Shown in pieces: positions 5,650 through 62,174 of a stretch of DNA of 64,000 nt; within the stretch, counting starts at the first letter, position 1; each line of letters opens with the position of its first letter. The DNA comes from Klebsormidium nitens. Taxonomy: Eukaryota; Plantae; Klebsormidiophyceae. The notes under the pieces are model-generated. The model was given only the letters and a program-made list of their open reading frames with translations. It did no database searches and was not told where the DNA came from. Where the stretch lies: contig DF238762.1 in the NCBI GenBank assembly GCA_000708835.1, positions 117,483 to 181,482 on the forward strand. The letters run 5' to 3'. The translations under genes were made by a program, and so were the position numbers.

Positions 5650-6262
5650 GATGATTTAGTTCGCTAAAAAAAATTGACTCTTTCTATTTCAACAAATAAA
5701 CCAAGCATTCGTCCTTTTTGCTCAAAGCCTAAGTTAGTCAACTTTTTGCAAGGAATTTTATAATCAAAGTACTCACAATTGAGTACAATCAGGAACTATG
5801 AGCATCAATAGGCCCTGTCTATTTAGGTGTGCCGAACAACAACTATTTCTTTTAAAAAAGAAGTTTTTTGTTTTGCATAGTAGTGATTATAAGCCAATAT
5901 TTCATCAAACTATTCTTTTTTTTCGACTTCGAGAGAACAGATTGTTGTCGCAAAAGTGTGGCTTATTTTTTTTTCAAGCAAACATATGTTTTTTTGGATT
6001 TATAGTTCTTACGCATAGAAAAAAGAACTTCATTGATTTATTTCTTATAACGAGCAAAAAATCGTACGTTTATATAAAACCAAATTTGATATTTGGTGCT
6101 CACTTTCATGCCTATATGTTGAGTATTCGTTGTAGATCGAATTGCCTTGAACACACTTTTCAGTGGGATACGATTATCAATACTCATCCCTTGGCTAAAG
6201 AGGTAATCGATTACTTAGGTGGGGCTTTCTCTGCTTTTTAAAAGCACCGTTACTGAATATTT

Positions 6263-7012: not shown

Positions 7013-7141
7013 ATGTCCAACACTGGAACCACTGGAAGGATTCCCCTGTGGCTGGTTGGCACAGTGGCTGGCCTAGCCGTCATTACCCTGGTAGGGGTGT
7101 TTTTTTATGGGGCCTATTCTGGTTTAGGATCATCCCTCTAA
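7013..7141 (+). CDS. psbJ: Photosystem II protein J
   Basis: [42 protein letters not shown]. Confidence 0.98.
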
Positions 7142-7273
7142 AACCTTAGGTCTCAAAAAAAAAGCTTCGAACCAATTGAAGGTCATAAGCCTTTTTACTA
7201 GCCTGGCAACTCAACTTTTAGAAAAAGTTGCCAGCGTTAGACGCTCACACTTTTTTTTTCATCTTTTACAAAT

Positions 7274-7597
7274 ATGAAGAAAAATATGAAGAAAGATAAA
7301 GAGTATTATATTTGGCTATATAATATAACTGAGTTCTGGGAGCTTAGGAAGATTGAAAATGATTGGACTTTAAAGTCTACCGCTAAACAGGCGCATAAAG
7401 ATTATATGATGAGTCTACTGGCAGGGAAGGACGCTACGGCAAATTGTTTTGCTACTCTCTTAGTCATTTGTACAATCGATAGAATCAATACTTTAGAATA
7501 AGCTTATAACAACTTTGTGTACTATCCCCTAAGAAATATTGCTTTTGTCATGTTTTTTATTGCCACAAACTTTAACAAAAAAACTAACTTTAAGTAA
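7274..7597 (+). pseudogene. Orphan family A copy with internal TAA (7499-7501); paralog of ORF274
   Basis: Ungapped hand alignment to ORF274 gives 28/91 identities and continues past the stop; the next stop TAA (7595-7597) overlaps the ATG of ORF180. Confidence 0.75.
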
Positions 7598-8139
7598 TGA
7601 CTAGGCAAAAAGACGTTCATCATTCTCTTTCAGAAGAAGAATTTGTTTTAAACAAGGAGTTAACTGGTGAAATTCCTTTACCAAGCTCTATAAATATAAA
7701 TGAGCAAAAGTTCAAAAATGAGAAGACTTGGTTCAGTAAGTTTATTTTTGTTTTTAAAGGATTAATCTTCAGCGGATTTTTTCTTTTACTGAGCGGAGGG
7801 TATATATTGTTTTGTTTTAGGCTGACTACTCGACAAAATTACGCCACCACATTTTATTCCAGGGTGGCCAGTCTCACTTCATCTTGTCATTTAAGTAATG
7901 CAATGCCAACGACTATTGCATTAGCTACGCCTAGTTCTGTTTCGAAGTCTGTTTCTGTTAATGCACAGACAACAATTCGCTCCGATCCTTCAAAAACTAG
8001 CTCTAGCTCTTTACATCGTAGTAAATCTTATAATATTCCAAAAAATATTCTTTCTATAGAACCACCGCCCGTTCACGCACGATATATACTTGTATTAAAA
8101 AAATGGACTCTAGTCCATCTTATTGTCGAGCAGTGCTAA
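7597..8139 (+). CDS. Orphan ORF180: hydrophobic (TM-like) segment plus Ser/Thr-rich region; possibly the N-terminal part of a fused ORF180/405
   Basis: 180-codon ORF; no recognisable family; weak similarity to ORF135 at 26533. Confidence 0.6.
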   Translation: MTRQKDVHHSLSEEEFVLNKELTGEIPLPSSININEQKFKNEKTWFSKFIFVFKGLIFSGFFLLLSGGYILFCFRLTTRQNYATTFYSRVASLTSSCHLSNAMPTTIALATPSSVSKSVSVNAQTTIRSDPSKTSSSSLHRSKSYNIPKNILSIEPPPVHARYILVLKKWTLVHLIVEQC

Positions 8140-9320
8140 AGAACGCAGATTGTGGGGCTAGGAGTAGGATTGAAATAACCAAACAAGATAAAAAAAAGAA
8201 AAAACACAGGCATTCTAAAGGTCGGAAAGGATCTTTTTGGCGTCCTCTGAAGAAAAAACTTCAAATCCGTAGAAGAAAGAGTGGTAAAAGAGCCCTAATT
8301 GGGATAACAGCTTCTACCCGAGATTATTCTCAAGAAAAAGATCTCTGCGAGGGGGAGGGCTTTAATCCAAGAATCATAGTATCTTCTCATAGTGAAATTG
8401 CCTTGATCGGGATGGCCTATTCGCTCTATTGCCAATCCTGTATGCAATTGCCGTATGCTATTCCTTTTTTGCCGCAAATTCTCCCTATCATCGTAAAAAC
8501 TGCGATTGCAAATTTTTCGACTTTACCAAACCTAGAAACTAGTGAAAGTGCACCTCAGGCTGTAGACAAGGTCGCAGAAGGCGTAGTCAAATTTTTACCC
8601 GTCATTGATTCGGGAATCAATGTTTTTGACGCTGTTCGTAAGAGAAATACTATCCCTATAGAGAAAAAAATTCAAATGGAAATTTCGTTTGTTCATAGAA
8701 AAGTTAAAGAGACTTTGCTTTCTGCTATTGATGATTCTGGTTTAATAGTAGTTGTCACAGAAGCTAAAATAAGAGATCTTCAGGGCATAAAAGAGATGGA
8801 TGGCAGCTCTCATAGGTTTAAAACCGCGGAGGAATTATGGCTTTCTGATGATATAGAAGATGCACAAATGGCTTTTTGTGATGGAAACCCTATACCTCTT
8901 TATAGTCGCATGGCGGCTACGCAGTATCTTTGTAGATGGGACGCACCGCTTATGATTTCTCCTGGTGCGCCTCAATTACGCCAGCGAATCCTTGATAACA
9001 CATTAGCTTTTCAAACTCGAATGAGAGTCCAGTTAAACAAGATTGTCATTTTCAAAAAACCAGTTTCACAATCGGAACCATTTTTTACACAATTGCATAT
9101 ATGGGCTAATTCTATGCCTTACATGCGAGAAAATCTTTATGAGACTCAAAAACACTCTTTTAAAAAAACAGATACATATTGGCAAGAAATAGAACCTCAG
9201 CTCATTGAGAGCAGCTTTCAAAAAGGTTGTGACAAGTATCAAGAGAAGTATGGAATTAAAATCTCTTCGATTGATCGACAAAACTGTATTAAGCAGTTTA
9301 TAGATAAAAAGTTTTTGTAG
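8103..9320 (+). CDS. Orphan ORF405, function unknown
   Basis: 405-codon ORF in AT-rich DNA; conserved block DGSSHRF..LW..D..ED.QM.F shared with a decayed paralog at 27421-27675; followed by a strong hairpin. Confidence 0.75.
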   Translation: MDSSPSYCRAVLKNADCGARSRIEITKQDKKKKKHRHSKGRKGSFWRPLKKKLQIRRRKSGKRALIGITASTRDYSQEKDLCEGEGFNPRIIVSSHSEIALIGMAYSLYCQSCMQLPYAIPFLPQILPIIVKTAIANFSTLPNLETSESAPQAVDKVAEGVVKFLPVIDSGINVFDAVRKRNTIPIEKKIQMEISFVHRKVKETLLSAIDDSGLIVVVTEAKIRDLQGIKEMDGSSHRFKTAEELWLSDDIEDAQMAFCDGNPIPLYSRMAATQYLCRWDAPLMISPGAPQLRQRILDNTLAFQTRMRVQLNKIVIFKKPVSQSEPFFTQLHIWANSMPYMRENLYETQKHSFKKTDTYWQEIEPQLIESSFQKGCDKYQEKYGIKISSIDRQNCIKQFIDKKFL

Positions 9321-9345
9321 CTTAGTAATTCGATGTGTTTATTTC

Positions 9346-9372
9346 TACCCTCATCCAACTTGGATGAGGGTA
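9346..9372 (+). terminator. Stem-loop after ORF405
   Basis: taccctcatcca-act-tggatgagggta, perfect 12-bp stem followed by ttttt. Confidence 0.8.
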
Positions 9373-9483
9373 TTTTTATTCATTTTTTCATGCAATTTTT
9401 TTTTTAACTGTGTTGAAAACACCTGATACGCTTATAATTCATGTAAATAATCTTTTTATTTATATAAATATTATTTCAGTACA

Positions 9484-10308
9484 ATGCTTCATCAAAAGCC
9501 AAAAGTATTGGTTATATGTTTGAAAACAAATGTAAAAAAAGCCTTTAAAAAAATAAAAGTTTCGACTATTGAAAAATTAAAGAGTACAGGAGCAATCGAC
9601 AAAATGGATTATGAAGATTATGAATATCATGAAGATTATCTTTGTTATTATGACATACCTAAAAAGTATTTCAATGCTAGGTATAATTTTTATTATAAAT
9701 ATCCCGATTATGAAAAGGATGATAAATTTGATATAGATCTATACACCGAACGTGAATCTTTCCGACTTGAGGGCATTAAAGATGATCCTATTTTATTACC
9801 TATTGTCCGACAGGCTTATAGAAGAGATATGATCAAGCCAGCAAGACATTTTAGGGGGACCATTCGTCACTTTCTCGCTCTTCAAGAAATTTTTTCGATT
9901 GATCGGATTAACACTGCACAAGAGTGTTATAGCAAAGGAATTATCTCAAAAATTCACAATATTCGATTTGCGAGTGAGTATTTGGCTGATACTGAGTACA
10001 GTCGCCCATTGTCTCCTAGGAAGTCGGATTACGTGAGAGAAATCATTGTAAAAAATTCATTTGTTTTTGTATTCAACAGGTTTGAAGGTAACATATTTAA
10101 AGACATTTCTAGATACGTGCAACCTTCTGATCTTTATGAGGTTGATAGAATAAATTTTGCGTTGTTAAGAATGTTTTCTTATAGCTTGTTTTTTTTGAAT
10201 AATTTAATAGATCGGTATGACGACGTTTTAGAATATTCACATTTTTTCGGAACGAAAAACCAAAAGCATTATTTCAAAAGCTCTTATCCAGGGTTTCGTA
10301 CATTATAA
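9484..10308 (+). CDS. Orphan ORF274 (family A), function unknown
   Basis: 274-codon ORF; homologous to the 7274-7597 pseudogene. Confidence 0.72.
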   Translation: MLHQKPKVLVICLKTNVKKAFKKIKVSTIEKLKSTGAIDKMDYEDYEYHEDYLCYYDIPKKYFNARYNFYYKYPDYEKDDKFDIDLYTERESFRLEGIKDDPILLPIVRQAYRRDMIKPARHFRGTIRHFLALQEIFSIDRINTAQECYSKGIISKIHNIRFASEYLADTEYSRPLSPRKSDYVREIIVKNSFVFVFNRFEGNIFKDISRYVQPSDLYEVDRINFALLRMFSYSLFFLNNLIDRYDDVLEYSHFFGTKNQKHYFKSSYPGFRTL

Positions 10309-10338
10309 AGAGCCAAAACAATACTCAAAAAAGACGAC

Positions 10339-11154
10339 ATGACGATCAACGTGAAAGAATTACTAAAGAATCCTGAAATTCAAGCTCGCTATATAACCTA
10401 TTCCAATAGATTAATTGATTGTCAACGAACTCTGAAACAAGATTTCAGAGACTTAGAATATTTTTTATATTCTTTTTCTGACTACAAGCATGTTTCGGAC
10501 TCAAAAAAACTTGAAGACAAAGAGATAGAATATATTTCTCAAGAAATGGATGCGGTAAAGCTACTTCTAACAACAGACTATAAAGAAAAAGATTCTACTA
10601 TAAACAAATTCAAACACTTTTTTTTTAATTCAAATCATTCTCGTTTTGCAGATGCAGGCATATTAGCTAAATATAAAAGCGAGAGATATATGTTGTTGGA
10701 AAAAGCTCTAAAAACCTACGTATTTCCAGAGCTCAAAGCTTCCCTCGCAGATAAGGTTGATGCTTTAAAACAGGATTTTACGCGAGCTCCAAATTCCCTA
10801 ACGCTCCAAGTTTATAGCCACATTTCCGAATATTTTCACGATAAGCACACTAAAATTGAGACGATTTTTTTGAATCATTTTAATTATAATTATATAAAGG
10901 GCAATAACCAAAATACAAAACTTTCAATTAGTTTGTCAATAAAAGCATCAGAAGAGGCTGTTAAATCCATAAGAACCGAAGACTTAATAGCTTACTTTAA
11001 TTCTAAAAATTTAGCTAAACCTCCATATCGTGAACGATATAAAGCTTTAACGGGGCGTGAGCCCGAAGTGTCGTTCAATCAGCATACGCTAGCTTATATA
11101 CCTGGAGCTTTTTTTAGTATTGGGGATTCTATTGATGACAGTGGGTATCTATAA
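10339..11154 (+). CDS. Orphan ORF271, function unknown
   Basis: 271-codon ORF starting 30 nt after ORF274 on the same strand; no recognisable motif. Confidence 0.65.
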   Translation: MTINVKELLKNPEIQARYITYSNRLIDCQRTLKQDFRDLEYFLYSFSDYKHVSDSKKLEDKEIEYISQEMDAVKLLLTTDYKEKDSTINKFKHFFFNSNHSRFADAGILAKYKSERYMLLEKALKTYVFPELKASLADKVDALKQDFTRAPNSLTLQVYSHISEYFHDKHTKIETIFLNHFNYNYIKGNNQNTKLSISLSIKASEEAVKSIRTEDLIAYFNSKNLAKPPYRERYKALTGREPEVSFNQHTLAYIPGAFFSIGDSIDDSGYL

Positions 11155-11387
11155 AAAACGAAAAATTATTTCAAAAAAAAAGTATGAGTCAATATTTTAA
11201 TGCAACAAAACAAAAAAGAAAATTGTTAAAAGAAAAGTTGGGCACTTAACATTTGAAATGGATATGGTTTGGTCCCGGTTGCACTGTGTGCATGTAGGCA
11301 TCATGCTCGAGATGTGCGATAATAGATGTGTGCGGTCTTGCTTCAGATGACTGCTGACTGGCAACTGTTCTAGCACCAGGCTATAGG

Positions 11388-11479
11388 ATAGGCAAAGACT
11401 CTGTGTTTTTGCTGTCTGTATTGGTGTCAGGGTCAATGGATTGAATGCAAGCCGCGTGTTTGTTTGTGTCGTCTGAAGA
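11388..11479 (+). repeat. psaA leader segment, copy 1 of a dispersed imperfect repeat
   Basis: Shares actctgtgt, tttgctgt, gggtcaatgga(t/c)tgaatgcaag and ttgtgtcgtctgaaga in the same order with 39213-39295. Confidence 0.85.
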
Positions 11480-11493
11480 GAGGAGAAATCTCG

Positions 11494-13740
11494 ATGACAA
11501 TAAGCCCTCCAAAACAAGAAGTAAGAGTTGTAGTTGAACGAGATCCCGTAAAGACATCCTTTGAGCGATGGGCAAAACCAGGCCATTTCTCTCGGACTCT
11601 CTCAAAAGGTCCTGCTACAACGACATGGATCTGGAATCTGCATGCAGATGCTCATGACTTTGACAGCCAGACAAGTGATCTTGAAGACATCTCACGAAAG
11701 GTGTTTAGTGCTCACTTTGGTCAATTATCAGTAATCTTTCTATGGCTTAGTGGGATGTACTTCCATGGCGCTCGTTTTTCGAATTATGAAGCATGGTTAA
11801 GTGATCCGACTCATATTAAGCCGAGTGCTCAAGTTGTATGGCCGATTGTAGGTCAAGAGATCTTAAACGGAGATGTAGGTGGGGGGTTTCAAGGCATTCA
11901 GATCACCTCTGGGTTTTTTCAATTATGGCGTGCAAGTGGGATTACTACTGAGCTTCAGCTCTATGCAACAGCGATTGGCGGGCTCGTAATGGCAGCTTTG
12001 ATGCTCTTTGCAGGCTGGTTCCACTATCATAAGTCAGCACCACGTTTGGAGTGGTTCCAGAATGTTGAGTCAATGCTCAATCACCATTTGGCAGGACTTC
12101 TCGGTCTTGGTTCTTTATCATGGGCCGGTCACCAAGTCCACATCTCATTGCCAGTCAACAAGCTGCTCGATGCTGGTGTAGATCCGAAAGAGATTCCTCT
12201 TCCTCACGAATTCTTGCTGAACAGAAGCTTAATGACATCTTTATTCCCAAGCTTTGAGAAAGGTCTCTCTCCTTTCTTTACCTTAGATTGGGCAAGTTAT
12301 TCTGACTTCTTAACCTTCCGTGGTGGATTGAACCCAGTAACGGGTGGGTTGTGGCTTACAGATACAGCGCACCATCACTTGGCAATTGCCGTGCTCTTTT
12401 TGGTAGCTGGGCATATGTACCGGACAAATTGGGGCATAGGCCATAGCACTCGCCAAATCTTAGAGGCTCATCGAGGGCCTCTTACCGGAGAGGGCCATCG
12501 TGGGTTGTACGAAACGTTAACCACTAGCTGGCACGCACAGTTAGCAATCAACTTAGCATTGTTGGGTTCGCTGAGCATTATTGTGGCTCATCACATGTAC
12601 TCGATGCCCCCTTATCCCTACCTCGCAACCGATTACCCAACTCAACTCTCTTTGTTCACTCATCATACGTGGATTGGTGGATTTTGCATTGTTGGTGCAG
12701 CAGCTCACGCTGCTATCTTTATGGTGCGCGACTATGACCCTGCAACTCATTACAATAACTTGTTAGATCGAGTCATTCGGCATAGAGATGCTATTATTTC
12801 GCATCTAAACTGGGTATGTATCTTTCTTGGTTTCCATAGCTTTGGTCTTTATATCCACAATGATACGATGAGTGCTCTGGGACGTCCTCAAGATATGTTC
12901 TCAGATACAGGCATTCAGTTACAACCTGTGCTGGCTCAATGGGTACAACGTATCCATAGCTTAGCCCCAGGTTTGACTGCTCCAAACGCAGGAGCAAGTA
13001 CGAGCCTAACTTGGGGAGAAGGGTTGGTCGCAGTGGGAGGAAAGGTTGCTATGACCCCAATCCCTCTAGGCACCGCAGACTTCCTTGTGCATCATATTCA
13101 TGCTTTTACTATCCACGTAACTGTGCTTATCTTGCTAAAAGGCGTATTGTTTGCCCGTAGTTCGCGTCTCATCCCAGACAAGGCAAATCTAGGCTTTCGA
13201 TTCCCTTGTGATGGTCCAGGCCGTGGAGGCACTTGTCAAGTCTCTGGCTGGGATCACGTATTTCTTGGTTTGTTCTGGATGTACAATTCAATCTCGGTAG
13301 CAATCTTTCACTTCAGCTGGAAACTTCAATCAGATGTGTGGGGAGCAGTCACCCCTCAGGGTGTCTCCCATATTACGGGCGGGAATTTTGCTCAAAGCGC
13401 AATCACTATCAATGGATGGCTTCGTGACTTCTTATGGGCCCAAGCTTCCCAGGTGATTCAGTCCTATGGGTCTTCTCTCTCAGCGTATGGTCTTCTCTTC
13501 TTGGGGGCTCACTTTGTATGGGCATTTAGCCTGATGTTTCTATTCAGTGGACGTGGTTATTGGCAAGAGCTTATTGAATCCATTCTATGGGCTCATAACA
13601 AGCTGAGAGTGGCCCCATCCATTCAGCCAAGAGCCTTGAGTATTGTGCAAGGCCGAGCCGTTGGGGTTGCTCATTATTTGTTAGGAGGAATTGCTACAAC
13701 GTGGGCCTTCTTCCTTGCACGGATTATTGCAGTTGGATAG
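11494..13740 (+). CDS. psaA: Photosystem I P700 apoprotein A1
   Basis: [36 protein letters not shown]; [14 protein letters not shown] motif; AGAGGAG SD upstream. Confidence 0.99.
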
Positions 13741-16376: not shown

Positions 16377-17250
16377 TCCATGACAGTCGATTATCCTCTC
16401 CTATCCTAAGTGATAGGATGAGGTTTTTTTACGAGAAAAGTTTTTCACTCTTTGAAAGAATTGGATTGACAATTGCCTATCGATAAAACAATACATCGAG
16501 ATATGGACGACGTAGAATTAGAGTTAGGCGTCAGCTTTCCTCGATTTCAGATTACCCAAGAGCTATGCAGTCGTTACGAAGTTGACTATTTGCGGGCTGC
16601 TTTTTATCAAGGGACTTCTTAACTTCTTCATACGAATCTTTTTACTATTTTGTTTTTACTTCTATGGGATCCAAAGTTCTTGATTTCTTCTGGTTTTCCT
16701 ATCTTTCAGGGTCTTATTTTTTTGCAAGATTTTCGTTTTTCAAACTTATCATACTCAACTGCTGAGCCACTGTTTACAAAGCAGCTGATGTTTGGCTATA
16801 TATTGACTCGGATTCGTAATCAAATAAAACAAATAAAGCTTTTCCGTTGGCTTGGGATGAGTTTTGGAAGCCAAAAACGTATCATTTTTGTTTATATGTT
16901 TAAGTGAATGGCGGAAGTTGCATCAGGATGCAACGGGCTGAACCTTCTATAAGTTTGAAAAGATTTTTTGAAAGAATTCTAAGCTTGATTCAGCCCAATT
17001 CAATGCGTTTTCTTCTTTCGAGCTTTTTCAACTTATAAAAGTACGATAAAGCAAAAGAATAAACTGCTCTTGGTTTGATGATGTTTGATATTTATTAAAG
17101 ATCAGAGACCCTTCCGTAATGCAAATGAGGATTAGGCTTATCAGTTTGCCAAATCGCGAAGAATCCCTGCAATTTGAAATACTTCGTTTGAAAATTGAGT
17201 TTTTAGATTTTTTATATCGAATATATATGTTTTGTGGAAAAAAGCTTAGG

Positions 17251-24851: not shown

Positions 24852-24987
24852 TTAGGGAGACATTGGGGTTCAAAACCCTCATCCTAGGCCGATCAGAACC
24901 CTCCCACGGGTAGCACGCCCTTCTCTCACACATACTATCAATCACAATATTGATTGAAGCCAATCCCCGTGGTTGGTTAGAATACTT

Positions 24988-25619
24988 GGGCTATTAGCTC
25001 AGTGGTTAGAGCGCGCCCCTGATAAGTGCGCCGCAAGAGGTGAGCCCAGGGTGGATCTCAGTTTCCTTTGAGAAAAGGTTTGAGGCCTTGCCAGCGCCTG
25101 ACCGGGCCAAGGATCCTAGGGACCCTAGCATGGCGCAAGAGCAGAGCAGTCGGGGCATGGAAAACATTGAATAGCAAACTGAAAAATAAGATGAGAAAAA
25201 GAATAGAGTAATATCTTTTCTTTCCTTCTTCCCCCTATGGCGGGATATCGGTGCTGAGAATCCAGGGCTTACTTATCCGTCCCAGGATCTATGGTCATCT
25301 CTTGGCTCACTCCACTCTTTTTTTATTTTTTTACAGGCAGGCTATACCCTCGACTGCATTCCCATGGGCTTTTCACTGCGGGATCCCTTTCTGAATAAGG
25401 GACGGCGACATCACACTTTGGAGGTTTTCTTTTTCCTTAAAACATTGAGAATGAATGGAAATGGATCTTTTCAAAAAAGATGTCAGGGTAGTCTATTTCG
25501 AATCAAATAGATACCTAGAGAGCGCAGTACGGCGAAAAGCTGTATGTTGTGCTTGAGGAACTTTCTTAGAATGAGAAGTTCCACGGGCGAGGCCTCTGGT
25601 TCAAATCCAGAATGGCCCA
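24988..25619 (+). tRNA. trnI: tRNA-Ile(GAU), exons 24988-25025 and 25585-25619, group II intron 25026-25584
   Basis: GGGCTATTAGCTCAG...CCCCTGATAA|GTGCG...; exon 2 GGGCGAGGCCTCTGGTTCAAATCCAGAATGGCCCA; domain V-like GAGAGCGCAGTACGG near 25520. Confidence 0.96.
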
Positions 25620-25728
25620 TCCGCGATTTGTGTGGTTAGTAGGCCTTCCTTCCAACTTTCAGTTGGAAAAACTGTTTGGCCGGAGGAAAAAAAGAGAAAT
25701 TCTTTTGTCTATTTTTTCCTATTGACTG

Positions 25729-26446
25729 GGGGGTATAGCTCAGTTGGTAGAGCGCTGCCCTTGCAATGGTGCCGTACGAATGACTCCTTTATAGGAGTCT
25801 TAGCTTTTCTACGCGGATTCAGCCAAATGAAAAAGTGAGCTTCATACCCAACGCCTTACCTCCCTTCCAAGTAGACGGGATGGGGACTATCACATGGCGT
25901 GTATCTGTTTCCAGCAAAGCCCCTTGTTAAAAAGAATTTGATGAAGCAGGTGGAAGAATGATGGGAGGTCAAGAATATTCTGTGTGAGTCGCAGGTTCAA
26001 AGGTGTTAGTAAGGCCAGGCAGGCCTTTCCAGAATGGAAATTATGGATGGGGGGTGGGCGGCCCCACACCTGTGCAAGCGGGGCGGTATACCCATTCCCT
26101 GAGTAAGCATCTAGGCTCGTCACGGAGGCTTGTTCCCCCACCTTGCTCCGCGTAGCAAAGGACAACGGGATTGCCTAAAGGGGCTATTTTTGCCCTACGG
26201 TTTCAGAGGGGCCACCTCAAAGAGAACGCGTGCGGCACCAAGCTGTGCGTATCCTTGGGAGAAGGCCTTGAGGTTGGTATAGGGTAGACTGTCGTTTGCT
26301 CAATGCTTTCCAAAGAGCTCACCATGGCACGAGCTGTCCGGTGTGTTCGGGGGGGAACGTATGTATTATTCTGGCTGTTAAGGCAGATAAACTATGCACA
26401 CGTTTCCTCATGGCAGATGTCAGCGGTTCGAGCCCGCTTACCTCCA
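25729..26446 (+). tRNA. trnA: tRNA-Ala(UGC), exons 25729-25766 and 26412-26446, group II intron 25767-26411
   Basis: GGGGGTATAGCTCAG...CCCTTGCAA|intron|GGCAGATGTCAGCGGTTCGAGCCCGCTTACCTCCA; G3:U70 Ala identity pair present. Confidence 0.96.
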
Positions 26447-26532
26447 TACCTTTTGTGTTTTTTTCTTCTCTCTCCCTCTCTTTTGGGAGGGAGGGGTTTC
26501 TTTTTTGCTTTTTTGTATGAGAAGTATATTTT

Positions 26533-27880
26533 ATGAAAGGTGAAAATAAAAACTGTCTTGATCTAAAAACAAATCAATCTAAGAGATTAGAATCAGGAAA
26601 AAGCTTTGTAAGACTCGATCCGTCTATTCAAGACAGCCCAAATGTCTCTTCTTTTCAAGAGGAGACAAAGAATTCTTTTTCTTCATTTTTGTTGATTTCG
26701 TTGGAGATAGGCCTGAGAGGTTTCGTAGTCTCGGTACTTTCTATTTTGTTGTTTAAGCTACAGCAGGTGTGTGCAACACCTTTGCCACTTGTAGCTGGGA
26801 CGACTGCTCAATTGAATCTTACACAAACCCCCGAGACCTCGATTGTTCCACTAACAGTAGATGCTTCCATTCCACTATCGCACTCTATTTTTCTAAATAG
26901 AATATGTTTGGCAACATTGGCTCGGCCCACCATGTTTTGAAGTCTGTTTGTTGATGATCGTCGACGTTCATGGTTCGATTGGTCTATCCATAGAAACCTA
27001 CCATCCAATAGCAAAAACACTCGTAATAAAATAATAAAAGAGGGGTTATAGCATCTTTGGGAGACGACAATGCGGCGAATAGCTTGTTTGATATGAATGA
27101 GCAATTGAATGTGATAACTTGGTCTGAGAATAGACAAAAATGAGTCATTATTACCACTTTGTTGGTAATTATTAGTTATTAATCGCAATTTCCCGTCCGG
27201 TATAGAATATGTTGCCACGCCTATTCAAAATTTTTAGTAAGAATTTACCGGCTTTAAAAGAACCCGCATTCACTATAGAAAGTGGAGTGAATATTTTGAA
27301 AGTAGCAGTAGAGGCGATAGAAAAACGCTCTAATATACAAACAAAAGGAAAAATGATAATTCCTTTCGATGTGCAAAAACAAGCAGACTAAGTGCTCCCA
27401 GATATAAAAAGAATGAGAGTTTGCGATCAACTGTTCAAAAGGGAAAATTTCGAAACATAGTCAACGGAGAATTCAATTTTGACGGCAGCTCGCATCGGTT
27501 TATGGCGCTTCAAGGTCTATGGACTCTAGATCTTTTTGAAGACTTCCAAATGATTTTCGGTACGTATATTTCTCAACCTTTCATTGATTACGAAGAGTTC
27601 CTTTCTTTATGGTCTACAGACATCGCAATCGCTCTTGGTAAAAAACTAGACGAAACGATCCAGAAGCAGACTTAGAGGGAATAATTGAAGAGTTGATCGA
27701 TGAGGGGTGAGTATGCAAATTGTGGGGTTTTCCTTGATAACACTTGACTTTGCTTCAAAATCAATTGTGCGAGCTGTGCGTTGCGCTGGTGGTGGAACGT
27801 CCCTTTGCTTGACAACTTGAGAAGGGGCCTTTATATTATGCAAGTAGAAAGAACACGCTCTTTCGACTCGCATATGCAAG
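26533..27880 (+). pseudogene. Fragmented paralog of ORF180/ORF405 in the trnA-23S spacer (3' limit approximate)
   Basis: Pieces TPIQNF / IESGVNI..EAIEKRSNI / DGSSHRFMALQGLWTLDLFEDFQMIF match ORF405 in collinear order, interrupted by stops and frameshifts. Confidence 0.82.
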
Positions 27881-27945
27881 TTTTTTGAGCGATTCTTTCT
27901 CTATGGCATACGATTTGTTTTAGCGTGGCCTTCGGGCGATGAAGG

Positions 27946-30973: not shown

Positions 30974-31095
30974 CATTTTGGTGCCCTAGGCACAGTGGAA
31001 CCACACTCATCCTATCCCGAACTGAGTTGTGAAACACTGCAGCGGTCAAAATACTATGGGGGATGCCCCATGGGAAGATAGCTAGGTGCCAAAAT
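30974..31095 (+). rRNA. rrf: 5S ribosomal RNA
   Basis: ATTTTGGTGCCCTAGG...GGAACCACAC...ATCCCGAAC...GTGAAAC...GATAGCTAGGTGCCAAAAT with complementary ends. Confidence 0.95.
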
Positions 31096-39212: not shown

Positions 39213-39295
39213 ATAGACAAAAACTCTGTGTGTTTGCTGTTTGTATCAAGGGTCAATGGACTGAATGCAAGACTTCTGCTTGTGTCGTCTGAAGA
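39213..39295 (+). repeat. Degenerate copy 2 of the psaA leader in the ndhD-chlL spacer
   Basis: See 11388-11479; similarity stops right before the psaA Shine-Dalgarno. Confidence 0.85.
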
Positions 39296-42984: not shown

Positions 42985-45900
42985 CTACTTATTCTTCCTA
43001 TTAGGCTTGTTGTAAGATCGAGACACAAGGAGGCGCCACAAGCTCTTGGGAACAAGTGGATAGGCCTTGTTTCGAGCCCATAGCTTGAACCCTTCGGGTT
43101 GCTTTTCGAATTCAGAGCGGATCGACTTCACAAGAAGTATACGCAACTCGGTTCGACCCAGTTGGGGGATGCCTGCCTTACGACCAAGCATCTCTACCCT
43201 CCATATGCGATCGGACCAACGAAGCATCCAGTCAAACCCTAGGTCTCGCAGGGCGCGTCTTAGCGGCTTGAGCCTCTCTCTCCATGTTTGTTGGTAGGGC
43301 TTCTCAGGGAAGTAATAGCGAGTTCTCCACCAGATTGATGATGCACGCCAAGTGCGCAAGGAATACATAGCTTTCTGGATAAAGTGTTCGGGAAGCCCAT
43401 GGAAGGAGTAGCTCATCTCATGGGCCATAGGTCTCGCAAGGGTACCCATAGACGTCATGTAAAGATCCTTCGTACGAATCTCCATTGTACGGGCGACGGA
43501 TGGGCCATCCTCGTATCCCTTTAGCTTGGACACTTGAAGGTCCATCCACTGGGAGAAGAAAGGCTGGAGGGGTACGGGCTCAGGAAGCCTATTTCCTACG
43601 TGACGCACCTTACGCTCGTACTTCCTTTTCGTCACTGGCTCTTCTTGTTCTATCTGCCCCAAACCCGACGACACACTGTTTTTCAATAGAAGATTCGAGT
43701 CATTATGACTCTTGCGGGAGCTTAGCATATGATGGAGCAACGCTTTACTTGCAAAGAGCCGATCCTGTTTGTTCCTGTCGGCTCCGTAAGAGGCTGATTC
43801 GTGGTTGGGGGAAGGCAAGTTTTTCGCTGGCAGGCGTCCGGCTAGCGGTTTTCCTTGACCGTTGCTCTGCAAGGACTGGACTGTCAATTTCCAGGTAGGC
43901 TGGACTTGGGCCCAGGTTTGGAACGGGTGAGTTCGGTGCTGGGATCCATCTTGAGCATTGGAGTGAGTCAGTTGGAGTAGCTTTGCGGGCAGATAAGACA
44001 AGGTGTTGATTTGAGTCTTAAGCCACCGGGATGTACGATTCGCCCATGCAGTTAGTTGAAAGATCCACTGATAGATTTGTTGAGATAGCTCGTGAGGGGA
44101 AAGCAAGACGGGTCTTGGCAGCCTGTTTTCTTCATTGGTACCTGGGAGCCTGTTCTCTGGGCGGATAGGCTGGCCAAACGCCCCGATGGCCTGGCATTGC
44201 CAAAGAGCAATTCCCTGTCGGGCCTCTCTGCCTAGGTGCCTGGTACCTTGCTGTCTAAGATTATTCTCTGCTATTGCATGCTTGGGGGAAGGAGGGCTAT
44301 ATACGAACTTCCTTTGTACTACTCCCATAGCCCAGCCTAGAGTTCGTACCTTCATTCGTGGGAGAGGTTGTACAAGGTTTCTTGTTCGTACCTGATTCGC
44401 TTCGTCGTGCCGTCGATTATCAAGCTGTGCAGTTCGTATTTTCCACATTTCCGGATTTTCTATCTCTCTGGCGAGAGGACACTGCAAGCTTGGTGGGAGA
44501 CCCTGGGGTTGTACAGGGCCCATGAAGAGAACGGGATCCAGGGGAGTATGAATGTCAAGCATAACTGACTTGCCAAGAGCCTTACCCATCAGCGCTCTCC
44601 AGGCTCGTATGTCCTGAACAGTGTGCCAATGGAGAAATTCCATGTGCACGCTTTCTTCATTCTTTTTCCATGCTATACTTTCTTCGGGTTGGTTTTTACC
44701 CCAAGCCCAGACGTCCTCTGAGCGCTCTCCGCGTCGTTGATAGACCACCACGTTCCCCTTAAGGTTAAACCGCACTCTGTTTCCAACAACAAAGCTGCCA
44801 AATAAGCTACTATCCCACGGCTCAACCCCATAGTAGTTATAATCGTCAACCCCATCGTAGTAGTAATCAATTCCAAAGTCAACAGAGTCCTCAAAGCCGG
44901 GCCTGTAGACCACGAGATCGCTTTGCGCGGGGCTGGTTCGAGAGGTAGATACCTTTTTTACGTAAGCCAAGGCATCCACTAGGCTCACCATCCTTGGATT
45001 CTTATCCATCTCGTTTATAACTTCTAATTTATTGTTCATTGGCATCTGCTGCTTGAGTTTCTCAAGCCTAGTACTGCTCTCAGAATCCAGAAGATCAGGT
45101 GTCGCCCTTTTCTCCAGAGAGAGCCGATCTCGCAAGTGTTTGTTATAGCTAAGGCTCTCAATCTCTTTGCTCAGTGTACGGAGCTGCCATTCGACCTCAA
45201 GGGGAATTTCCACCTTAGGTAAGGAACGAACTGCAAGCCCCCAGGGAGCATGCAGGCGACGAGTATCTCGCGTAGCGTGTAGGCTTGAAGAGGGTACGAG
45301 GATGCGCATGCTCTTTGTGGCCTCCTGTTGCAAAATGTGAGCAAGCTGACGAGAGGGCAGGCTTAAATCATATAGCGCAACCATTAATTTTGCCATGTCT
45401 TCTCTCACCCAAGATCCGCTGGTCTCTACTTGGCATGCTTTTCTTTCGTTCACATCCATGAAAAGACGAAGTAAGTCCAAGGCCTCTTCCAGGCCAGATC
45501 TAGACTTTCGAAGACCTGTCACTGCCCTCTCAATCACCTCAGGCACCTCCAGCAATGTTCTCTCCAACGCTTTTTGAGATTCACGATAAGCTTGCAGCAT
45601 CTCTTTCCGATGGCGCGCATAAAGACGAAGCCGACGATTGATATTATCCTCCATACTTGAGGAAAGCATAGACTTGGTTGTTGCACTGAGACAAACCAGG
45701 GCGGCCTCCCTTAGTCGAACAGGCATGGACCGCAAGTTCCTCTCTCGAAGTTTGGGGTCCCTACGGCTCCATAGTCTCTTGCCCTCTGCCAAGTTCATAG
45801 GCTCTTTCAGCCCCCTAGGATTTTTAAGGGCTTGCTCTATATTATCAATATCAAGTGCTAGGCCTTGAAACAAAACAATGAGTCTTTGTCGTTGGAACTC

Positions 45901-48900
45901 GCTAAGGTGTAAAGCCGCGCTACAGGTGCCATGTACGAGACGTTCAATTTCGGCCGTACGCCATGAGAAGGCTTTATCGCGAATTGTGCTCTTTTGCTTG
46001 AGGATCAAAGCTTCTCTCTCTCTTTGGGGGAGGCTCTTGTTGAACTGAAATAGTTGACCCTTGGAATGGTCTGTTAGGTTTAAATCACTCCGTCGTAGAG
46101 CGAAAGATTCCCATTTTATGGCCCACTCTTCCAGGCTCATGCTATCCTTTTCCCAAACTTCTTGAGGATTGAGCACGGCCGATTTAGCAAGGCAGGCTGT
46201 AGCTCTTTCTAGGCACCGTTTACAGCTTTTCAAGCAGTTTCTCTCTACCCTCGTCACTTCGCGCCGGCTTAGTTGATTGTCCACAGCTTGTGCCAAGTTG
46301 CCAGCAAGAGACATTGTTCGCTCAACCTTTTTGCGCTCTATAGCGTATAGCTTTGTATCAAATGCTTGGCTCTCGGGAGAATCTTGGTGCAAAAGCCTTG
46401 AACCTTCCAACACAGCCATTGCAATTGTGCTTTCTATGTTCCGTAGGCTTGTTAGGTAGGACATAGCTTGCACTTGGCGAACAAGGCTGTGGCTCACCGA
46501 GCCAGAGGGAAGAGCTTCTTCTGCCCAGGACAGTGTGACCCCAGTAATTCCCAAACTACTCTGATGGCAAATCGAACTCCTATTCGGTCTTTGTCCAATC
46601 CGATCGAAGATCAAGCCATAGCTGGGTTGCCTCCAAAATAGACGAACCTCGTCCCATAGCTTTGCTTGCCTCCACGGAGATAACATGTTCCAGCCTTCTT
46701 CTCGCCAATGAAGGACAAAGAAACGGGCCACATGGGCTAAAGAGTTCCAGCTGTCTTGAATCGGAAGGGACAAGGTATGGGCTTTATCTTTAAGACTTCC
46801 AAGTGTTTCCATCATTTTCGGCTTCCCGCGCTTGAGGCTAAGCGTCTCAAGATGTATTTGATTCCTCCATGCCTTGCCTGGTTCATGCCGGATCAAGCCC
46901 GCGAAAACCTCTCTTCTTGCTCGTTCTTGGCTCAGTGCAAACTTCCTTGTTTCACGCTCTCGTTGTTTTAGGGCTTTAAGACGGCTCATAACACCTTCTG
47001 TGTAGCTCTGGTTGGGAATCAAACCTTGACCCAGCTTGCTCAGAAGTGGAAGAGGTACCTGTAGACTGTAAGAGGAATGCTGCCATAGACGTTCCACCCA
47101 TAGGTGTAGCTTATGGCCTAGAGCTCTGCGACGGATCTTGTTCATTCTGCGTAGCATTCTTTGTCTGGAGGAGTCAGGCGCTAGCCTCTTCCAAAGAGCA
47201 AGGCTGCGTCGTATTAGACCGCTTGAAAATAGACCGTTCTGGTCTTTTTTCTCATATTCGAAGCCCTCCGGATCATACAGCTCCTCATAGCTGTTCAAGC
47301 TCTCTTTGTCCGAAAGCTCTGGTTGGGGCTCTTGAGGCTGAGGCTCTAGCTGGTGCTCTTGAGTCTGAGGCTCTGGCTGATGCTCTTGAGGCTGAAGCTC
47401 TGGTGAGAACTGCTCCTTCGAATGAACCTCGTCAATGTGCTGGGTTGTTTGGCCATCTAAGATATCAACCTTTTTCCGAAGAGGTTTCATCAACACGTCT
47501 GAGTCATAGAGTTCACCCCGGAAAGCAAAGTCTTTAATACTTGTATAGTGTGGCAGTCCCTTAGCTCGCCGCTTACCCGTCTTATTGGCTAGTGTGCTCA
47601 TGCGTTGAAAGCGTGTGGGGTTGTTCAACTGCAATATCCGCCAGTTTCGGTTTGTTAGCACTTGTATAGGATAAACGTATTGATTTTGGGCCTTAGAGGA
47701 ACCAGCTTTTACAACCCAGTCGTAATTTTGTAGGTCCATTCCTAGCCACCATGGCTTAACGCCCGGAACCTGTCCATAAGTCTTTAGAAAAAACGAGGGT
47801 ACTCGCTTATTAATATAGGGAAGATCATGATATGGGACTCTAGTAAAGCCAAAAAAGCTCCACAACTTCTTCGTTACAGCCTTGCGTCTACGGATAAACC
47901 GATTGTAGTATTTGCGGAGCCCCTCAGAACTGTTGTCTGGTGGGTACACCCGTTTGTATAGCTTGCGATAGTAGTTAAGGTTGTCGTAGTCATTTCGGGG
48001 AAGAAGAAAGCTCTTCACCTCTATCTCGTTCAGTGCTTTCCAGGGGTTATGCACAAAGGCTTGGAGAGCCAGCTGGAGAGCCTGGAAAGGGTTCTTGATG
48101 CGCACGGCTATCATGTGGTCGCTAAAATGGCTCGACCTGTTTCTTGTTCCAACAAAGGAGGGAATCTTCTTCCACTTGCCTTCACTGACCTTGCGCTCGT
48201 ACCGGTTCCAAGAAAAAAAGCCCTTATTAGACGGTTGATAGATGAGCTGTGGCTTGCCCAAGATCATGAAGGTCAGGTACACCTTACTGTCCGAGGTAGG
48301 AAGGAGTGGGATGAAGGACCGAAACATACCCTGAACCACGCCGAGATTGAATTGAATCACCCGACTGGCAATCTCTACAAACTTTCCTAGCCATACCCCT
48401 CCAATCATATGAGAATACCTATCCACAAGAACAAGTATTCCATCCTTACTACGTAAATCGTATTCCAACCTTTTAGTAAATCGGGCCATGCTTTCCATGT
48501 CCATAGCAAGACTTATACCCCTCCGGAACAGATCCCAGTCCGGGTGTTTTTGAAAGGTCTCATAGGATGGACTTAAACCAAAGAACACTTGTTCGCTGTC
48601 ATTGTTCGTCGGAACATACTTCTTTAAGTTCACGTGGTCCAAATTCTCAAAATCGCTGTCTAAAACTTTGCCAATACGCTTACGCTTACGCTTGAAGTAT
48701 TGAGTGTTCCGATAGAGGGGCTCCAAGATGGTAGGGTAAGACTTGTATTGGCGTAAAGAAGATGGGCTTACCCCCCGACCTAAGCTGCTCTCTGGCTTCA
48801 CAAGACGTGGGATTCCAAGGAATCCTCGACTGATTTGATAGGACCGTCGAGGCAATAAGCCTGGCTTGAGACGACGTATTGTCTCCATAGACATAGATTC

Positions 48901-51900
48901 TCGACCGAACATATCATCCCATAGCTGGCGCCAAGGCGAGCGGTGCTCATATGTGGGTAAAAACTCTTTGATTTTCGCCAACCGACGCATCTCGGCGTAC
49001 CAGAAAGACTCCTCTTCTATCTTGGTACGTGTATTGGGCCGATCGGCATTGGGTCCTACTAGCCCCAGAGATGGGCGTAGGTATGGCAAGAAGGGTTGGT
49101 GGCCCTGGCTCCACTCGATATGCCTCCTAACGCCCACCAGATAGCCTGAAAGTCCTAGTCGGCGCACAGGCATCTCAGGCTTCCAGCTTTGAATCGCTGG
49201 GAGCTCTTCCACGTGTTTTAGGCCTTGGGACGTTTGGATTCTCTTAGCTTGTAAGCACTTTTGTCCCAAATACATCTGCTTAGTAACCTGAGAACGCCTG
49301 GAATGGCTCTCTAAGTGAGCTTGTCGGGCCCGCAATTCTCTTAACCTGTCTCTTTGGTTGGTAAAAATAGGCTTGACAAGTAAAGGATCAGTAAGAGCCT
49401 TATCCATTGACTGAGCGAGTGGCTCGGACGAAGATCGCACCATTGCCGCTAGTAAGCCAGGCTCTTTCAAAGGTTTTAAGCCCCCCGCGGGAGGCAGCCC
49501 CTCTCCGGCACTCGTACCCCAGAACGTGAGTGACTCTGCGGCGTCTAGAAGATCTGTGATCGAAGCCACTTCGCCTATCTTATCGTTCAACCCAAGCTCG
49601 GTCTCGCTGCTGTCAGTTTTATGTACTGGCAGCATAGGGTCCTCAAAAAAAATCTCATCGCTTTTATTCAACAGATTGCTACTCATACCATGGAATCGCC
49701 AGAAATCTGCCCAAGCCCAGGCTTTCTCAAATAGAGTGGGTCGCCTCATACGCTGGGGATTTGACGACTTCAACCAACTGGATTGAAGATGCAGAGAAGC
49801 CAGTCGAATGGCAAGGCGCAGACGACGCATTATTCTTTTCATCAGATATAGGTCTCGGATTGCCACTTGGTCAAGGGCTGAAGTATGAAGCCTATCTGTG
49901 CCGCTTTGCTCGTCGGCTCTTTCCGCTTCGTACTCGAGTATGGCTTCTAGGTCAACAGGGGAGCCGGAGCGGGTTGCCCATCTTGCGGCATCACCACGCT
50001 CCCAAGCACGTCGCATTATGTCTTTTCGGACTCCCTCCTGCGTATCATCTGTTTCAATACGAGAGCGAAGCTCCCCAAGAGCCCAGCGGCTCAGGCGTGG
50101 CAGGTGTTGTTTTTCCATTTCTGCTACAACCTCTGGTTCAGGCATGTTGAAGCGAACTTCTTTGGGTTCAGCATCATCTATATGAGGATCCATTGCCATA
50201 CGTCCAAGAACTCTTTCTTCGGGAAGTCCCGAATGCCCTAGATAGAATCGTGCAATGGGTCCAATCGGATAGTGATACTTCTTTTTGGATATCAATCCTC
50301 TCCACCTATCTGCCTCATTGACTTTACCTACGCGTCGGCTTATACGCCTATGCCAAGCCTGCCGCAGACTCTTATCTTTTAGAGAAGGAATGACCCTTTG
50401 CTTACGATTTTCGACTTCTTCAATTCGTTCTTTTTGCTCATCTAAATAAGCTTTACGCTCTCCCGCTGGAAGGGAGCTCTGAGCAAACCATTCCTCCGCT
50501 ATAATACGAGCACGGGAAGGATTGCGCGTTTCCTCATACGAGTTATGATGAAATATCTTGCGAAAAGGAAGTGAGCTGGCCTGGTCATACTCATCCACTC
50601 TCTCTTCTTTATTTCGCCAATTGTCACGTCCGATTAAATGATCCTCCCCATGATCGATATCGCCCCACCAATCTTCTTGCCACCACAACGAGTAAAAGCA
50701 TTCATAGAGGTCGTCCAAAGAAAGGAAAAGTGACTCTGGCTTGAACAAGAAAGACGGGGAGCTTATCGTCTCACTCTTATCCATTGGCAATTCATACCCC
50801 ATTTCCTCGCTTTTTTCGGAAACCTTTCCCTCTTTTTGTCTGTCTCTTGAGCGGGCCGGTTGTTTTTCATCCCCCTTGTCTTTTCTTTTCACAATTGTGA
50901 GAGCATCTTTTTCATAGGGTTGTATGCCTGTATCGAATAGGCCAAATATCATCTGTGATCTTTCTATCTCTTCTCCAAAGCTGAAAGCCGGAGGAAACAA
51001 TTCCAAAGCTTGCCCTTGCCTGTGACTCGCGGATAACCCTAGGTTAGCAAGTTCAGATTGAGGAATGTACTTTTGGGCTGTAGAATCCCATGTCCTATAC
51101 CTGTGGGTTCGTCCTCTCATTGTTTTTAAGCTTTCGAGGGAGTGCCTTTGCTTGTTTCCCCTGGCCAACATCCTTCCTAGGGCTAAACGATATCTAGCTC
51201 CCCATGCCCGTCTCCGCAGAGAAGGGTCCACACGCGAATCGTCTAGGCGTACCAACGCCAGGACCCTCTCGTCGTCTGCAAAGAGAGAAAGAGGGTTCAG
51301 TCCTGCTAAGCTTGCCAGTGCTTTTCGTCCTTCTTGCTCATAAAGACGTAGGCTTGTAAGTCTCAGGCTATGAGTAAGCATAAGACGTAAGTTATTCTCA
51401 CGGTTCTGCCTAGTAATCATTGCTTGTTCCGTCAAAGGCAGGGTGTATTGTGTTCTCTGATAGCGTTGCATCTTCTTACTAGCCAGCTTGGCTAGCTCGT
51501 AGCGCTGGGTTCGTAATTTCTTGCCAAGCAACGGAGGCAGAGGATTGTACAGTAAAGACCGTTTGTCCCATTGAGAACGATGCAAGGCCAAAAGCATCCG
51601 ACGGCCCCGTTCTGTCACACCCGATGTACCCTGTCGCCATAGGTTCGCCCACCTGTCCTCTAAGGGCCCAACCCATTCTAAAGCACTCACAATACCGATC
51701 TCATTGGACGCCCGCCAAGGTGCTGTTTTCTCTTTCTGAATGGCCTCACCTAGACCAGACCAAGAGTGGGTTTTGCTTGGCTCCCCTAGCAAAGTATGTC
51801 TTAACGGGGGCAGCTGGATCTGAGCTCTTCTATGATGCCATGAATCAAAGATTGGCATAGGAAGGGGGCTTAAGGAGGGGGTAGGTCCAACCCAAGTGCC

Positions 51901-61898: not shown

Positions 61899-62174
61899 AT
61901 GGAAAACAGTGACTGGTATGAAAATACTGATTGGTTTGAGGATAATGATTGGCTTTTAGGTGGAACTTTAGTAATGGATCTAACATTTAAATGTGTTTAT
62001 ATTATGGGCTCTCGTGACTCTATGATGATGAAAAACAAGCATGAAGAAATAGAAATCCCATTTTCTCTTTTAAATGTAGAACCTGAAGGGATGCCCAAGG
62101 AAATGCTTGGGCATTTAATTGCAAAAAAAGTTAAGCTGAGATTTTATCTTATGGCTTGCTATATGAAAACGTAA
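61899..62174 (+). CDS. Orphan ORF91 (family E), paralog of ORF167
   Basis: 29/71 identities with ORF167 by hand alignment (WL.GGTLV..L...CV.I.GS ... RFYL..CY). Confidence 0.7.
   Translation: MENSDWYENTDWFEDNDWLLGGTLVMDLTFKCVYIMGSRDSMMMKNKHEEIEIPFSLLNVEPEGMPKEMLGHLIAKKVKLRFYLMACYMKT

Follow-up and report, generated by a model that had tools for sequence, protein, structure and literature searches.

The spacer between psbJ and psaA in the plastome of Klebsormidium nitens NIES-2285 holds a cassette of orphan genes, which we analysed in a stretch of 64,000 nt, hereafter the window, that forms the final 64 kb of the plastome scaffold DF238762.1 (181,482 bp; assembly GCA_000708835.1). From the psbJ stop codon to the psaA start codon the spacer measures 4,352 bp. 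Its surroundings match published Klebsormidium plastomes, with a psbA exon accompanied by a group II intron fragment and orf453, and with a very large inverted repeat (PMC4877394, PMC4007539). A first-pass annotation of positions 7274–11154 had described five open reading frames (ORFs) on one strand, arranged as two modules that each begin with a family-A gene (A′, B and C followed by a hairpin, then A and D), and had read them as an operon-like system of foreign or lineage-specific origin that has duplicated within the plastome. The features are listed here by position in the window, those of the cassette first.

7274..7597, plus strand: A′, a broken fragment with about one third of the A/C domain and one in-frame stop
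7597..9320, plus strand: the B-C gene, consisting of ORF180 (B) and ORF405 (C), overlapping ORFs split by one frame change
8658..9317, plus strand: the A/C domain inside C, residues ~186–405, predicted to be all-alpha (alignments A1 and A2 and an AlphaFold2 model)
9346..9372, plus strand: a stem-loop followed by a T-run, downstream of C
9484..10308, plus strand: A (ORF274), a gene with the A/C domain that lacks the anchor module and is truncated at its 3′ end by the border of the inverted repeat
10307..10338, no strand: the junction between the large single-copy region (LSC) and the inverted repeat, which runs rightwards from ~10307
10339..11154, plus strand: D (ORF271), a D-domain ORF inside the inverted repeat and hence present in two copies
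7013..7141, plus strand: psbJ, a 42-aa ORF (PF01788), the last standard gene on this side of the LSC
11494..13740, plus strand: psaA, the first standard gene of the inverted repeat
16482..16700, plus strand: a degenerate A/C-domain remnant between rps14 and psbA exon 1 (tblastn with P0022–26 and P0046, E ~1e-5 to 3e-6)
27343..27675, plus strand: a degenerate A/C-domain remnant in the 16S-23S spacer (matched by many family members in tblastn, best E 5e-9)
27728..27836, plus strand: a promoter-like element of ~90 nt just upstream of the 23S rRNA (blastn and alignment A8)

The cassette ORFs are real and far beyond chance length. In 2000 shuffles of 7274–11154 the longest ORF had 143 codons and none reached 150, whereas 3390 of the 3881 bases of the real sequence lie inside ORFs of at least 150 codons. 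As the first-pass annotation had stated, B, C, A and D all lie on the plus strand between psbJ and psaA, the letters TAATG occur at 7595–7599, and the region is AT-rich, with a GC content of 0.30–0.39 compared to 0.45–0.49 for psaA. The minus strand of the psbJ-psaA interval carries short ORFs only. A′ had been counted as an ORF as well, but 7274–7597 is not one open frame. The GC content at third codon positions (GC3) was 0.27–0.32 in the island, like that of the neighbouring single-copy plastid genes petA, cemA and orf453, and in C, A and D the value at first positions exceeded those at second and third positions.

The unannotated ORFs of the window and of related contigs were compared all against all by BLAST and sorted into families. 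One domain was common to A′, A and C, in which it occupies the 220 C-terminal residues. The proposed kinship of A′ with A was borne out (32% identity over 72 aa, E ~1e-5), and searches with tblastn and BLASTP matched A′ to A and to the paralogues P0030 and P0014 at E 1e-5 to 2e-9. The view that only the first gene of each module belongs to family A was wrong, since C holds the same domain. A and C match each other directly at E 4e-4 and are linked through paralogues of 502–642 aa, with C matching a 605-aa ORF at E 1e-28, the 605-aa ORF matching a 530-aa ORF at E 4e-17, and the 530-aa ORF matching A at E 5e-12. The nearest relatives of A were P0010 and P0011, with 86% and 58% identity. In alignment A1, six positions were invariant across 18 sequences of ~20–70% identity, and a neighbour-joining tree of the A/C domain separated about eight deep paralogue clades.

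B and C had been taken for two genes of a module and turned out to be halves of one gene. Relatives P0002 (512 aa) and P0004 (548 aa) encode a B-like part and C in a single ORF, and compared with them the overlapping ORFs of the window, which lie in different frames, are one frame change apart. B is thus the detached anchor module of C. By hydropathy and composition, B consists of a hydrophobic segment followed by a Ser/Thr/Pro-rich stretch, and C of a Lys/Arg-rich stretch followed by the A/C domain. The long members of the family have the same order: a single hydrophobic segment at the N-terminus, next a stretch rich in Ser/Thr/Pro, then one rich in Lys/Arg (as many as 20 of 40 residues), and finally the domain. 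Full-length genes combine an anchor module, i.e. a short N-terminus, a hydrophobic segment and a Ser/Thr/Pro-rich linker, with a C-terminal domain of either A/C type or D type, and the Lys/Arg-rich stretch follows the anchor often, but not always.

The D family was unrelated to the A/C family in profile-profile comparisons with hhalign. Its members include P0012 (84% identical to D), P0013 (50%) and P0034–36. The first 120 residues of a D-type gene at the other end of the LSC, orf479 (L023 8222–9661), are nevertheless common to the A/C-type P0014 (530 aa) at 50% identity and E 2e-29, which points to an exchangeable anchor module that was swapped between the A/C and D families. A third orphan family of ~600 aa (596–633) was found on the minus strand in L002, L003, L004, L008, L011 and L023, either beside ndhK/J or inside the island, and its members have several hydrophobic segments. 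This family has no copy in the window, gave no Pfam match and no useful PDB match, and was unrelated to A/C by hhalign.

The border of the inverted repeat runs through the cassette. psaA is present twice in DF238762.1, and when the copy in the window (L022) was aligned to the other copy (L023, reversed), the two were 100% identical over 13,434 nt from L022 8814, which corresponds to window 10307. Therefore, A′, B-C, the hairpin and A are situated at the end of the LSC and D is situated in the repeat, in two copies. The far end of the repeat would lie near 62,000. Up to 10307, the window aligns with the A gene of L004, and because the L004 homologue extends 86 nt beyond 10307, A is cut at its 3′ end; it is without the last conserved helix of the family. 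To the right of 10307, the junction alignment showed that the window follows the 5′ region of D. An identical copy of D is located at L023 8846–9658, and there the other junction keeps the upstream extension of D, giving orf479 with 479 codons and an anchor module. Because orf479 spans the other junction, ORF271 is the repeat-borne 3′ part of a junction-spanning gene. The repeat copy keeps an in-frame start that is also used by some relatives (P0013), and it may still be coding.

This layout changes how the two proposed modules are to be read. The gap between A and D is 30 nt, as had been noted, but it is the inverted-repeat border and thus a junction scar rather than operon spacing. Co-orientation and a stem-loop after C were seen. 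The two-module operon-like system as such did not hold up, because the claimed border between the modules is a scar left by rearrangement where the repeat begins, and because A′, A and B/C are broken or cut.

The other junction of the same genome, after ndhC-ndhK/J, bears a second island, which contains a 619-aa minus-strand ORF, a gene of the A/C family with 502 aa, a degenerate copy resembling D, and a fragment of an anchor module. Multiplication within the plastome, as the first-pass annotation had supposed, is therefore evident from the A/C domain, of which the window contains five or more copies or fragments, from the doubling of D by the inverted repeat, and from this second island. Both junctions are also contained in contig_30943, whose flanks are 97.9% identical to the window on the single-copy side and 99.4–99.5% identical on the repeat side. 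Its repeat begins at a point corresponding to window 11236. In this contig D precedes A, and the pair lies outside the repeat on the side of ndhJ; on the psbJ side, the island is made up of A′, a C-type gene that occupies two frames, a fragment of A, and a long D-type gene that is broken.

Among strains, flanks were 98.7–99.4% identical, while the islands were 69–96% identical or could not be aligned, and the gene content, gene order and repeat border of the islands differed between plastomes with 99% identical flanks. In L001 and L002, C genes that are 96% identical occupy opposite junctions. A′ copies were present at the same place in L006 and L025 with 89–91% amino acid identity and were absent in L001, L008 and L011, where the homology to the window ends near 7223–7257. 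Two short ORFs of relatives, P0069 and P0070, matched the remnant at 27343–27675 at 67–76%. The 16S-23S spacer with this remnant (24852–27944) is 3.1 kb long, without trnI or trnA, and holds the promoter-like element too. In L010, the spacer between rps14 and psbA exon 1 holds a D-like remnant (L010 10100–10516).

The divergence of the island genes from the window was compared with that of the non-coding single-copy flank in three relatives:

L006: flank 1.6%, C 22%, D 7.4%
contig_30943: flank 3.1%, C 14%, D 31%, A 3.8% with three frame-changing indels
L001: flank 6.2%, C 23%

C and D thus diverge 4–14 times more than the flanking spacers. The ratio of nonsynonymous to synonymous substitution rates (dN/dS) was estimated by the Nei-Gojobori method with a codon bootstrap. 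For C, it was 0.50–0.68, with upper bootstrap bounds of 0.68–0.98 in comparisons with the window, and this shows that C is under weak purifying selection. Similar values were obtained for the 530-type genes (0.69; bootstrap 0.50–0.95) and for the ~600-aa family (0.54; bootstrap 0.33–0.88), and psaA, psaB and petA gave 0–0.02. A dN/dS value for A from the comparison of the window with L004 was discarded because frame-changing indels invalidate the codon alignment.

The hairpin at 9346–9372 was confirmed, with a 12-bp stem, a 3-nt loop, a folding free energy of −22.7 kcal/mol and a z-score of −5.1. It is unique in the window, and the stem-loop is nearly unchanged after every C orthologue (L001, L002, L003 and L006), whereas the C genes themselves are only 58–78% identical. 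Judged from this conservation and position, it is probably a 3′-end element of a plastid mRNA. A consensus promoter scan of the island performed no better than on shuffles (18 found, 15.4 expected), and no RNA family was detected in the island by Rfam at E up to 1. In relatives, copies of the ~90-nt promoter-like element precede many island ORFs; in the window, the only copy is the one beside the spacer remnant at 27728–27836, and the window's own island has none. A segment upstream of psaA (11388–11451) is 81% identical to 39213–39271 in the inverted repeat, and the two may represent a shared promoter or leader.

To define the reach of the families, the A1 profile was run against all 1.84 billion representative proteins, and 38 were found. 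All contexts that were checked (L001–L011) were plastid contigs with Klebsormidium gene order. Word searches returned few relatives, all of them unnamed or recorded as "hypothetical protein [Klebsormidium nitens]". The exhaustive profile search covered the A/C family; for D, word searches gave two relatives, and the relatives returned for D were of Klebsormidium type only. These results agree with the suggestion that the ORFs are lineage-specific orphans. Likewise, no standard plastid gene and no reverse transcriptase, nuclease or recombinase domain was recognised in the cassette ORFs, as had been claimed. Searches of Pfam, NCBIfam, PHROGs and PADLOC with all window ORFs and with the island proteins of relatives gave chance-level matches only, and among all 35 members of alignment A2 and the window ORFs there was no recombinase, transposase, reverse transcriptase, primase or DNA polymerase near threshold in Pfam, NCBIfam or PHROGs. 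The matches of A′ to La (E 0.017) and of D to vWF_A were at chance level. The sole PHROGs match below 1e-3 was a borderline entry of unknown function for D (E 9.8e-4), and the anti-phage defence models of PADLOC matched none of the window ORFs. A match to the type II restriction enzyme family REase_II in residues 337–423 of P0023 (18.9 bits, E 1.9e-4) was shared by no other member and is probably due to chance.

AlphaFold2 predicted an all-alpha structure for residues 92–405 of C, with a predicted local distance difference test score (pLDDT) >90 over the shared domain, and an all-alpha structure for D with a pLDDT of 75.5 and a predicted template modelling score of 0.74. The structure search that the first-pass annotation had named as a check revealed no relative of either protein. 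Foldseek searches of PDB with the C and D models gave no match at E <0.1, and the C model against PDB and BFVD gave only matches at E >0.1 with template modelling scores <0.25. Sequence-profile searches of PDB returned no useful match for the A/C, D or ~600-aa family, and scans of IMG/VR with the C and D profiles and of prokaryotic genomes (GTDB) found no relative. The two modelled all-alpha structures, for which these searches returned no structural relatives, are candidates for new folds.

Several further observations were made elsewhere in the plastome. Between petA and psbE, the conserved, unannotated orf147 (5798–6241, plus strand) has no Pfam match and belongs to none of the island families; one relative has it at 99% identity, and it occurs in every Klebsormidium-like contig seen. 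Rfam identified a 5S rRNA at 30977–31094 on the plus strand (70.6 bits, E 7e-13), and Civan et al. 2014 (PMC4007539) reported rrn5 as lost in Klebsormidium. A giant ORF of 4164 codons with a GC content of 0.50 is located at 42985–55479 on the minus strand. An Rfam match to IsrR at 1326–1512 on the minus strand, antisense inside psbC, is the cross-match expected from the kinship of isiA and psbC and not a separate RNA gene.

Land-plant plastomes have genes that span a repeat junction and leave a truncated copy in the repeat, such as ycf1/psi-ycf1 and rps19/psi-rps19. The D-type gene resembles the ycf1/psi-ycf1 pair in that orf479 spans one junction and its identical 3′ part (window 10339–11154) is found at the other, and also in that the repeat border differs between close strains. 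In contrast to ycf1, the Klebsormidium genes are orphans and not conserved plastid genes.

In behaviour, the closest analogue is the MORFFO genes of ferns, a likeness that does not extend to homology. Both are clusters of orphan ORFs that enlarge plastome spacers and shift in place and copy number between close relatives, and in both, evolution is roughly ten times as fast as in canonical plastid genes, with dN/dS <1 and frequent pseudogenes (PMC13000998). The islands differ in being tied to the two LSC/inverted-repeat junctions, with genes co-oriented with their neighbours, and in encoding proteins with a predicted membrane anchor and an all-alpha domain. Homology to MORFFO was not found in searches that used the island proteins and no morffo1/2/3 sequences, and no named fern or Roya ORF was returned; for D this comparison is weaker, as it consists of the word search that gave two relatives.

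Green-algal plastomes are known to carry foreign genes of integrase, primase and reverse transcriptase type, such as int and dpoB in Oedogonium and the int and primase ORFs of zygnematophyceans (PMC4877394). Like the island genes, these are free-standing ORFs outside the standard plastid gene set and often lie within or close to the inverted repeat, but they have recognisable Pfam domains, whereas none was present in the island proteins tested. Judged by the lack of homology and of such domains in the proteins compared, the island belongs neither to the MORFFO class nor to the integrase/primase/reverse transcriptase class. In the plastome of K. flaccidum, Civan et al. 2014 (PMC4007539) described two spacers as "conspicuous"; they measure 6,340 and 4,231 bp and contain ORFs of 1,785 and 1,425 bp without a database match. 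These come from the same genus and are very probably the same regions, and the report differs from ours in giving the absence of matches only.

Taken together, we consider it probable that the cassette is one of two modular, genus-restricted islands of orphan genes at the LSC/inverted-repeat borders, reshuffled by border movement and partly decayed in this genome. The location at the border, the families, the duplication of D, the truncation of A at the junction, the second island, and the turnover between near-identical plastomes are direct observations. The islands would be reshuffled as the border of the inverted repeat moves: an expansion would copy a gene to the other junction, and a contraction would leave copies that diverge or are truncated. 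Recombination between paralogues may contribute, as the two islands are in inverted orientation. Under such a mechanism no dedicated mobility enzyme would be needed for moving, duplicating, truncating or recombining genes. The island genes are probably dispensable enough for frequent loss or breakage.

A number of points weigh against this interpretation. Border movement and recombination between the islands are read from their end states, and the island ORFs are known here from sequence and structure models. Several relatives are metagenome contigs at 2–4x coverage, in which errors can mimic breaks and orthology is uncertain. The alignments behind the structure models are shallow, with 35 sequences for A/C and 12 for D. 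From composition, we infer that the full-length proteins are membrane-anchored in the plastid, and the Lys/Arg-rich stretch may bind nucleic acid. The membrane-anchored nucleoid proteins PEND and MFP1, which we take to be a lead and nothing further, were returned by no search. A diverges at about the neutral rate of the spacers and has frame-changing indels, so part of the island may be dead. D gave a dN/dS of 0.66–0.92, and in its closest pair (0.92) the bootstrap interval includes 1. The neutrality test suggested by the first-pass annotation hence had a mixed outcome, as C is not neutral (dN/dS <1), A is near-neutral and D falls in the range just given. The excess divergence of C and D could also result from replacement by paralogues, local hypermutation or copies that replicate elsewhere.

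The decay seen in part of the island raises the question of whether all of its ORFs are non-functional remains of genes, decaying in a junction spacer that has expanded. In favour of this, A′ is fragmentary, the B-C gene is split, A is both truncated and frame-shifted against its relative, two further remnants lie elsewhere in the window, the closest D pair is near neutrality, and presence or absence varies between close strains. General decay is nevertheless unlikely. Shuffled sequences never gave open frames of 271–405 codons at 31–38% GC, C and the 530-type genes have dN/dS values significantly <1, and residues are invariant across paralogues of only ~20% identity. Moreover, the A/C domain reached a pLDDT >90 from only 35 sequences, the stem-loop is more strongly conserved than the C gene that it follows, and full-length anchor-plus-domain forms persist in many genomes. 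Some of the same evidence would fit plastid genes of an ordinary kind that are specific to the lineage and serve the host, for example at the thylakoid or envelope, and that are co-transcribed as an operon and vary only because of relaxed constraint: the genes are co-oriented with psbE-J and psaA-psaB-rps14, C is under purifying selection, the stem-loop is conserved, the folds are confidently predicted, and C-type genes occur in all K. nitens-like contigs seen. We regard this as improbable, since no single paralogue is intact in all genomes and breaks are frequent, genes of one type occupy different junctions in the close strains L001 and L002, divergence is 4–14 times the spacer baseline, and the adjacency of A and D is a junction scar.

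Least probable is a recently integrated foreign element, viral, plasmid or mitochondrial, with its own genes, which was the origin that the first-pass annotation had put forward alongside a lineage-specific one and which we consider very unlikely. The island proteins have no integrase, polymerase, primase or reverse transcriptase domain, and no relatives were found in PHROGs, BFVD, IMG/VR or prokaryotic genomes, in searches that did not extend to Klebsormidium mitochondrial and nuclear DNA at the nucleotide level. It is true that the searches did not find the island genes in other streptophyte plastomes, that the DNA is AT-rich and variable in position and copy number, and that it diverges far more than its flanks, as do the fern MORFFO genes, which were proposed to replicate outside plastids (PMC13000998). 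Against this, the composition, including a plastid-like GC3, fits the neighbouring single-copy plastid genes, and the family is deeply diversified in Klebsormidium plastomes, where its approximately eight deep paralogue clades indicate a long residence. As candidates for the ends of an element, terminal inverted repeats were rejected, because the sole flanking pair is a homopolymer-rich 16-mer (7244–7259 and 11173–11188) that ignores the structural border at 10307. The island edges differ between genomes, and the right part of the island lies in the large inverted repeat. The cassette shows no sign of viral or plasmid origin.

The first-pass annotation had considered the system undescribed. 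This needs qualification, as the unmatched ORFs in two extended K. flaccidum spacers were noted in 2014 (PMC4007539) and the relatives are recorded as 'hypothetical protein'. The family structure, the modularity, the junction location and the turnover appear to be undescribed in Civan et al. 2014 (PMC4007539) and Lemieux et al. 2016 (PMC4877394). The reading of the cassette as one of two border islands explains the "extended spacers with unidentified ORFs" of Klebsormidium. It also carries a warning for annotation, in that ORF271 represents only part of a larger gene, copied within the repeat, and that ORF180 and ORF405 together make up a single gene.

Plastomes are usually stable. Since near-identical strains differ at both junction islands, Klebsormidium offers a natural series of snapshots of repeat-border movement and of the way in which orphan plastid genes arise, exchange anchor and domain modules, duplicate and disappear. 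A more far-reaching idea, to which we give little credence, is that the two candidate folds represent a plastid-only, modular family of membrane-anchored proteins with self-propagating genes, copies of which re-enter from outside the plastome, as was proposed for the fern MORFFO genes, or which promote breakage and repair at the repeat borders. If this were true, such genes would be a cause of the shifting repeat borders and of the rearrangement of plastomes in Klebsormidium.

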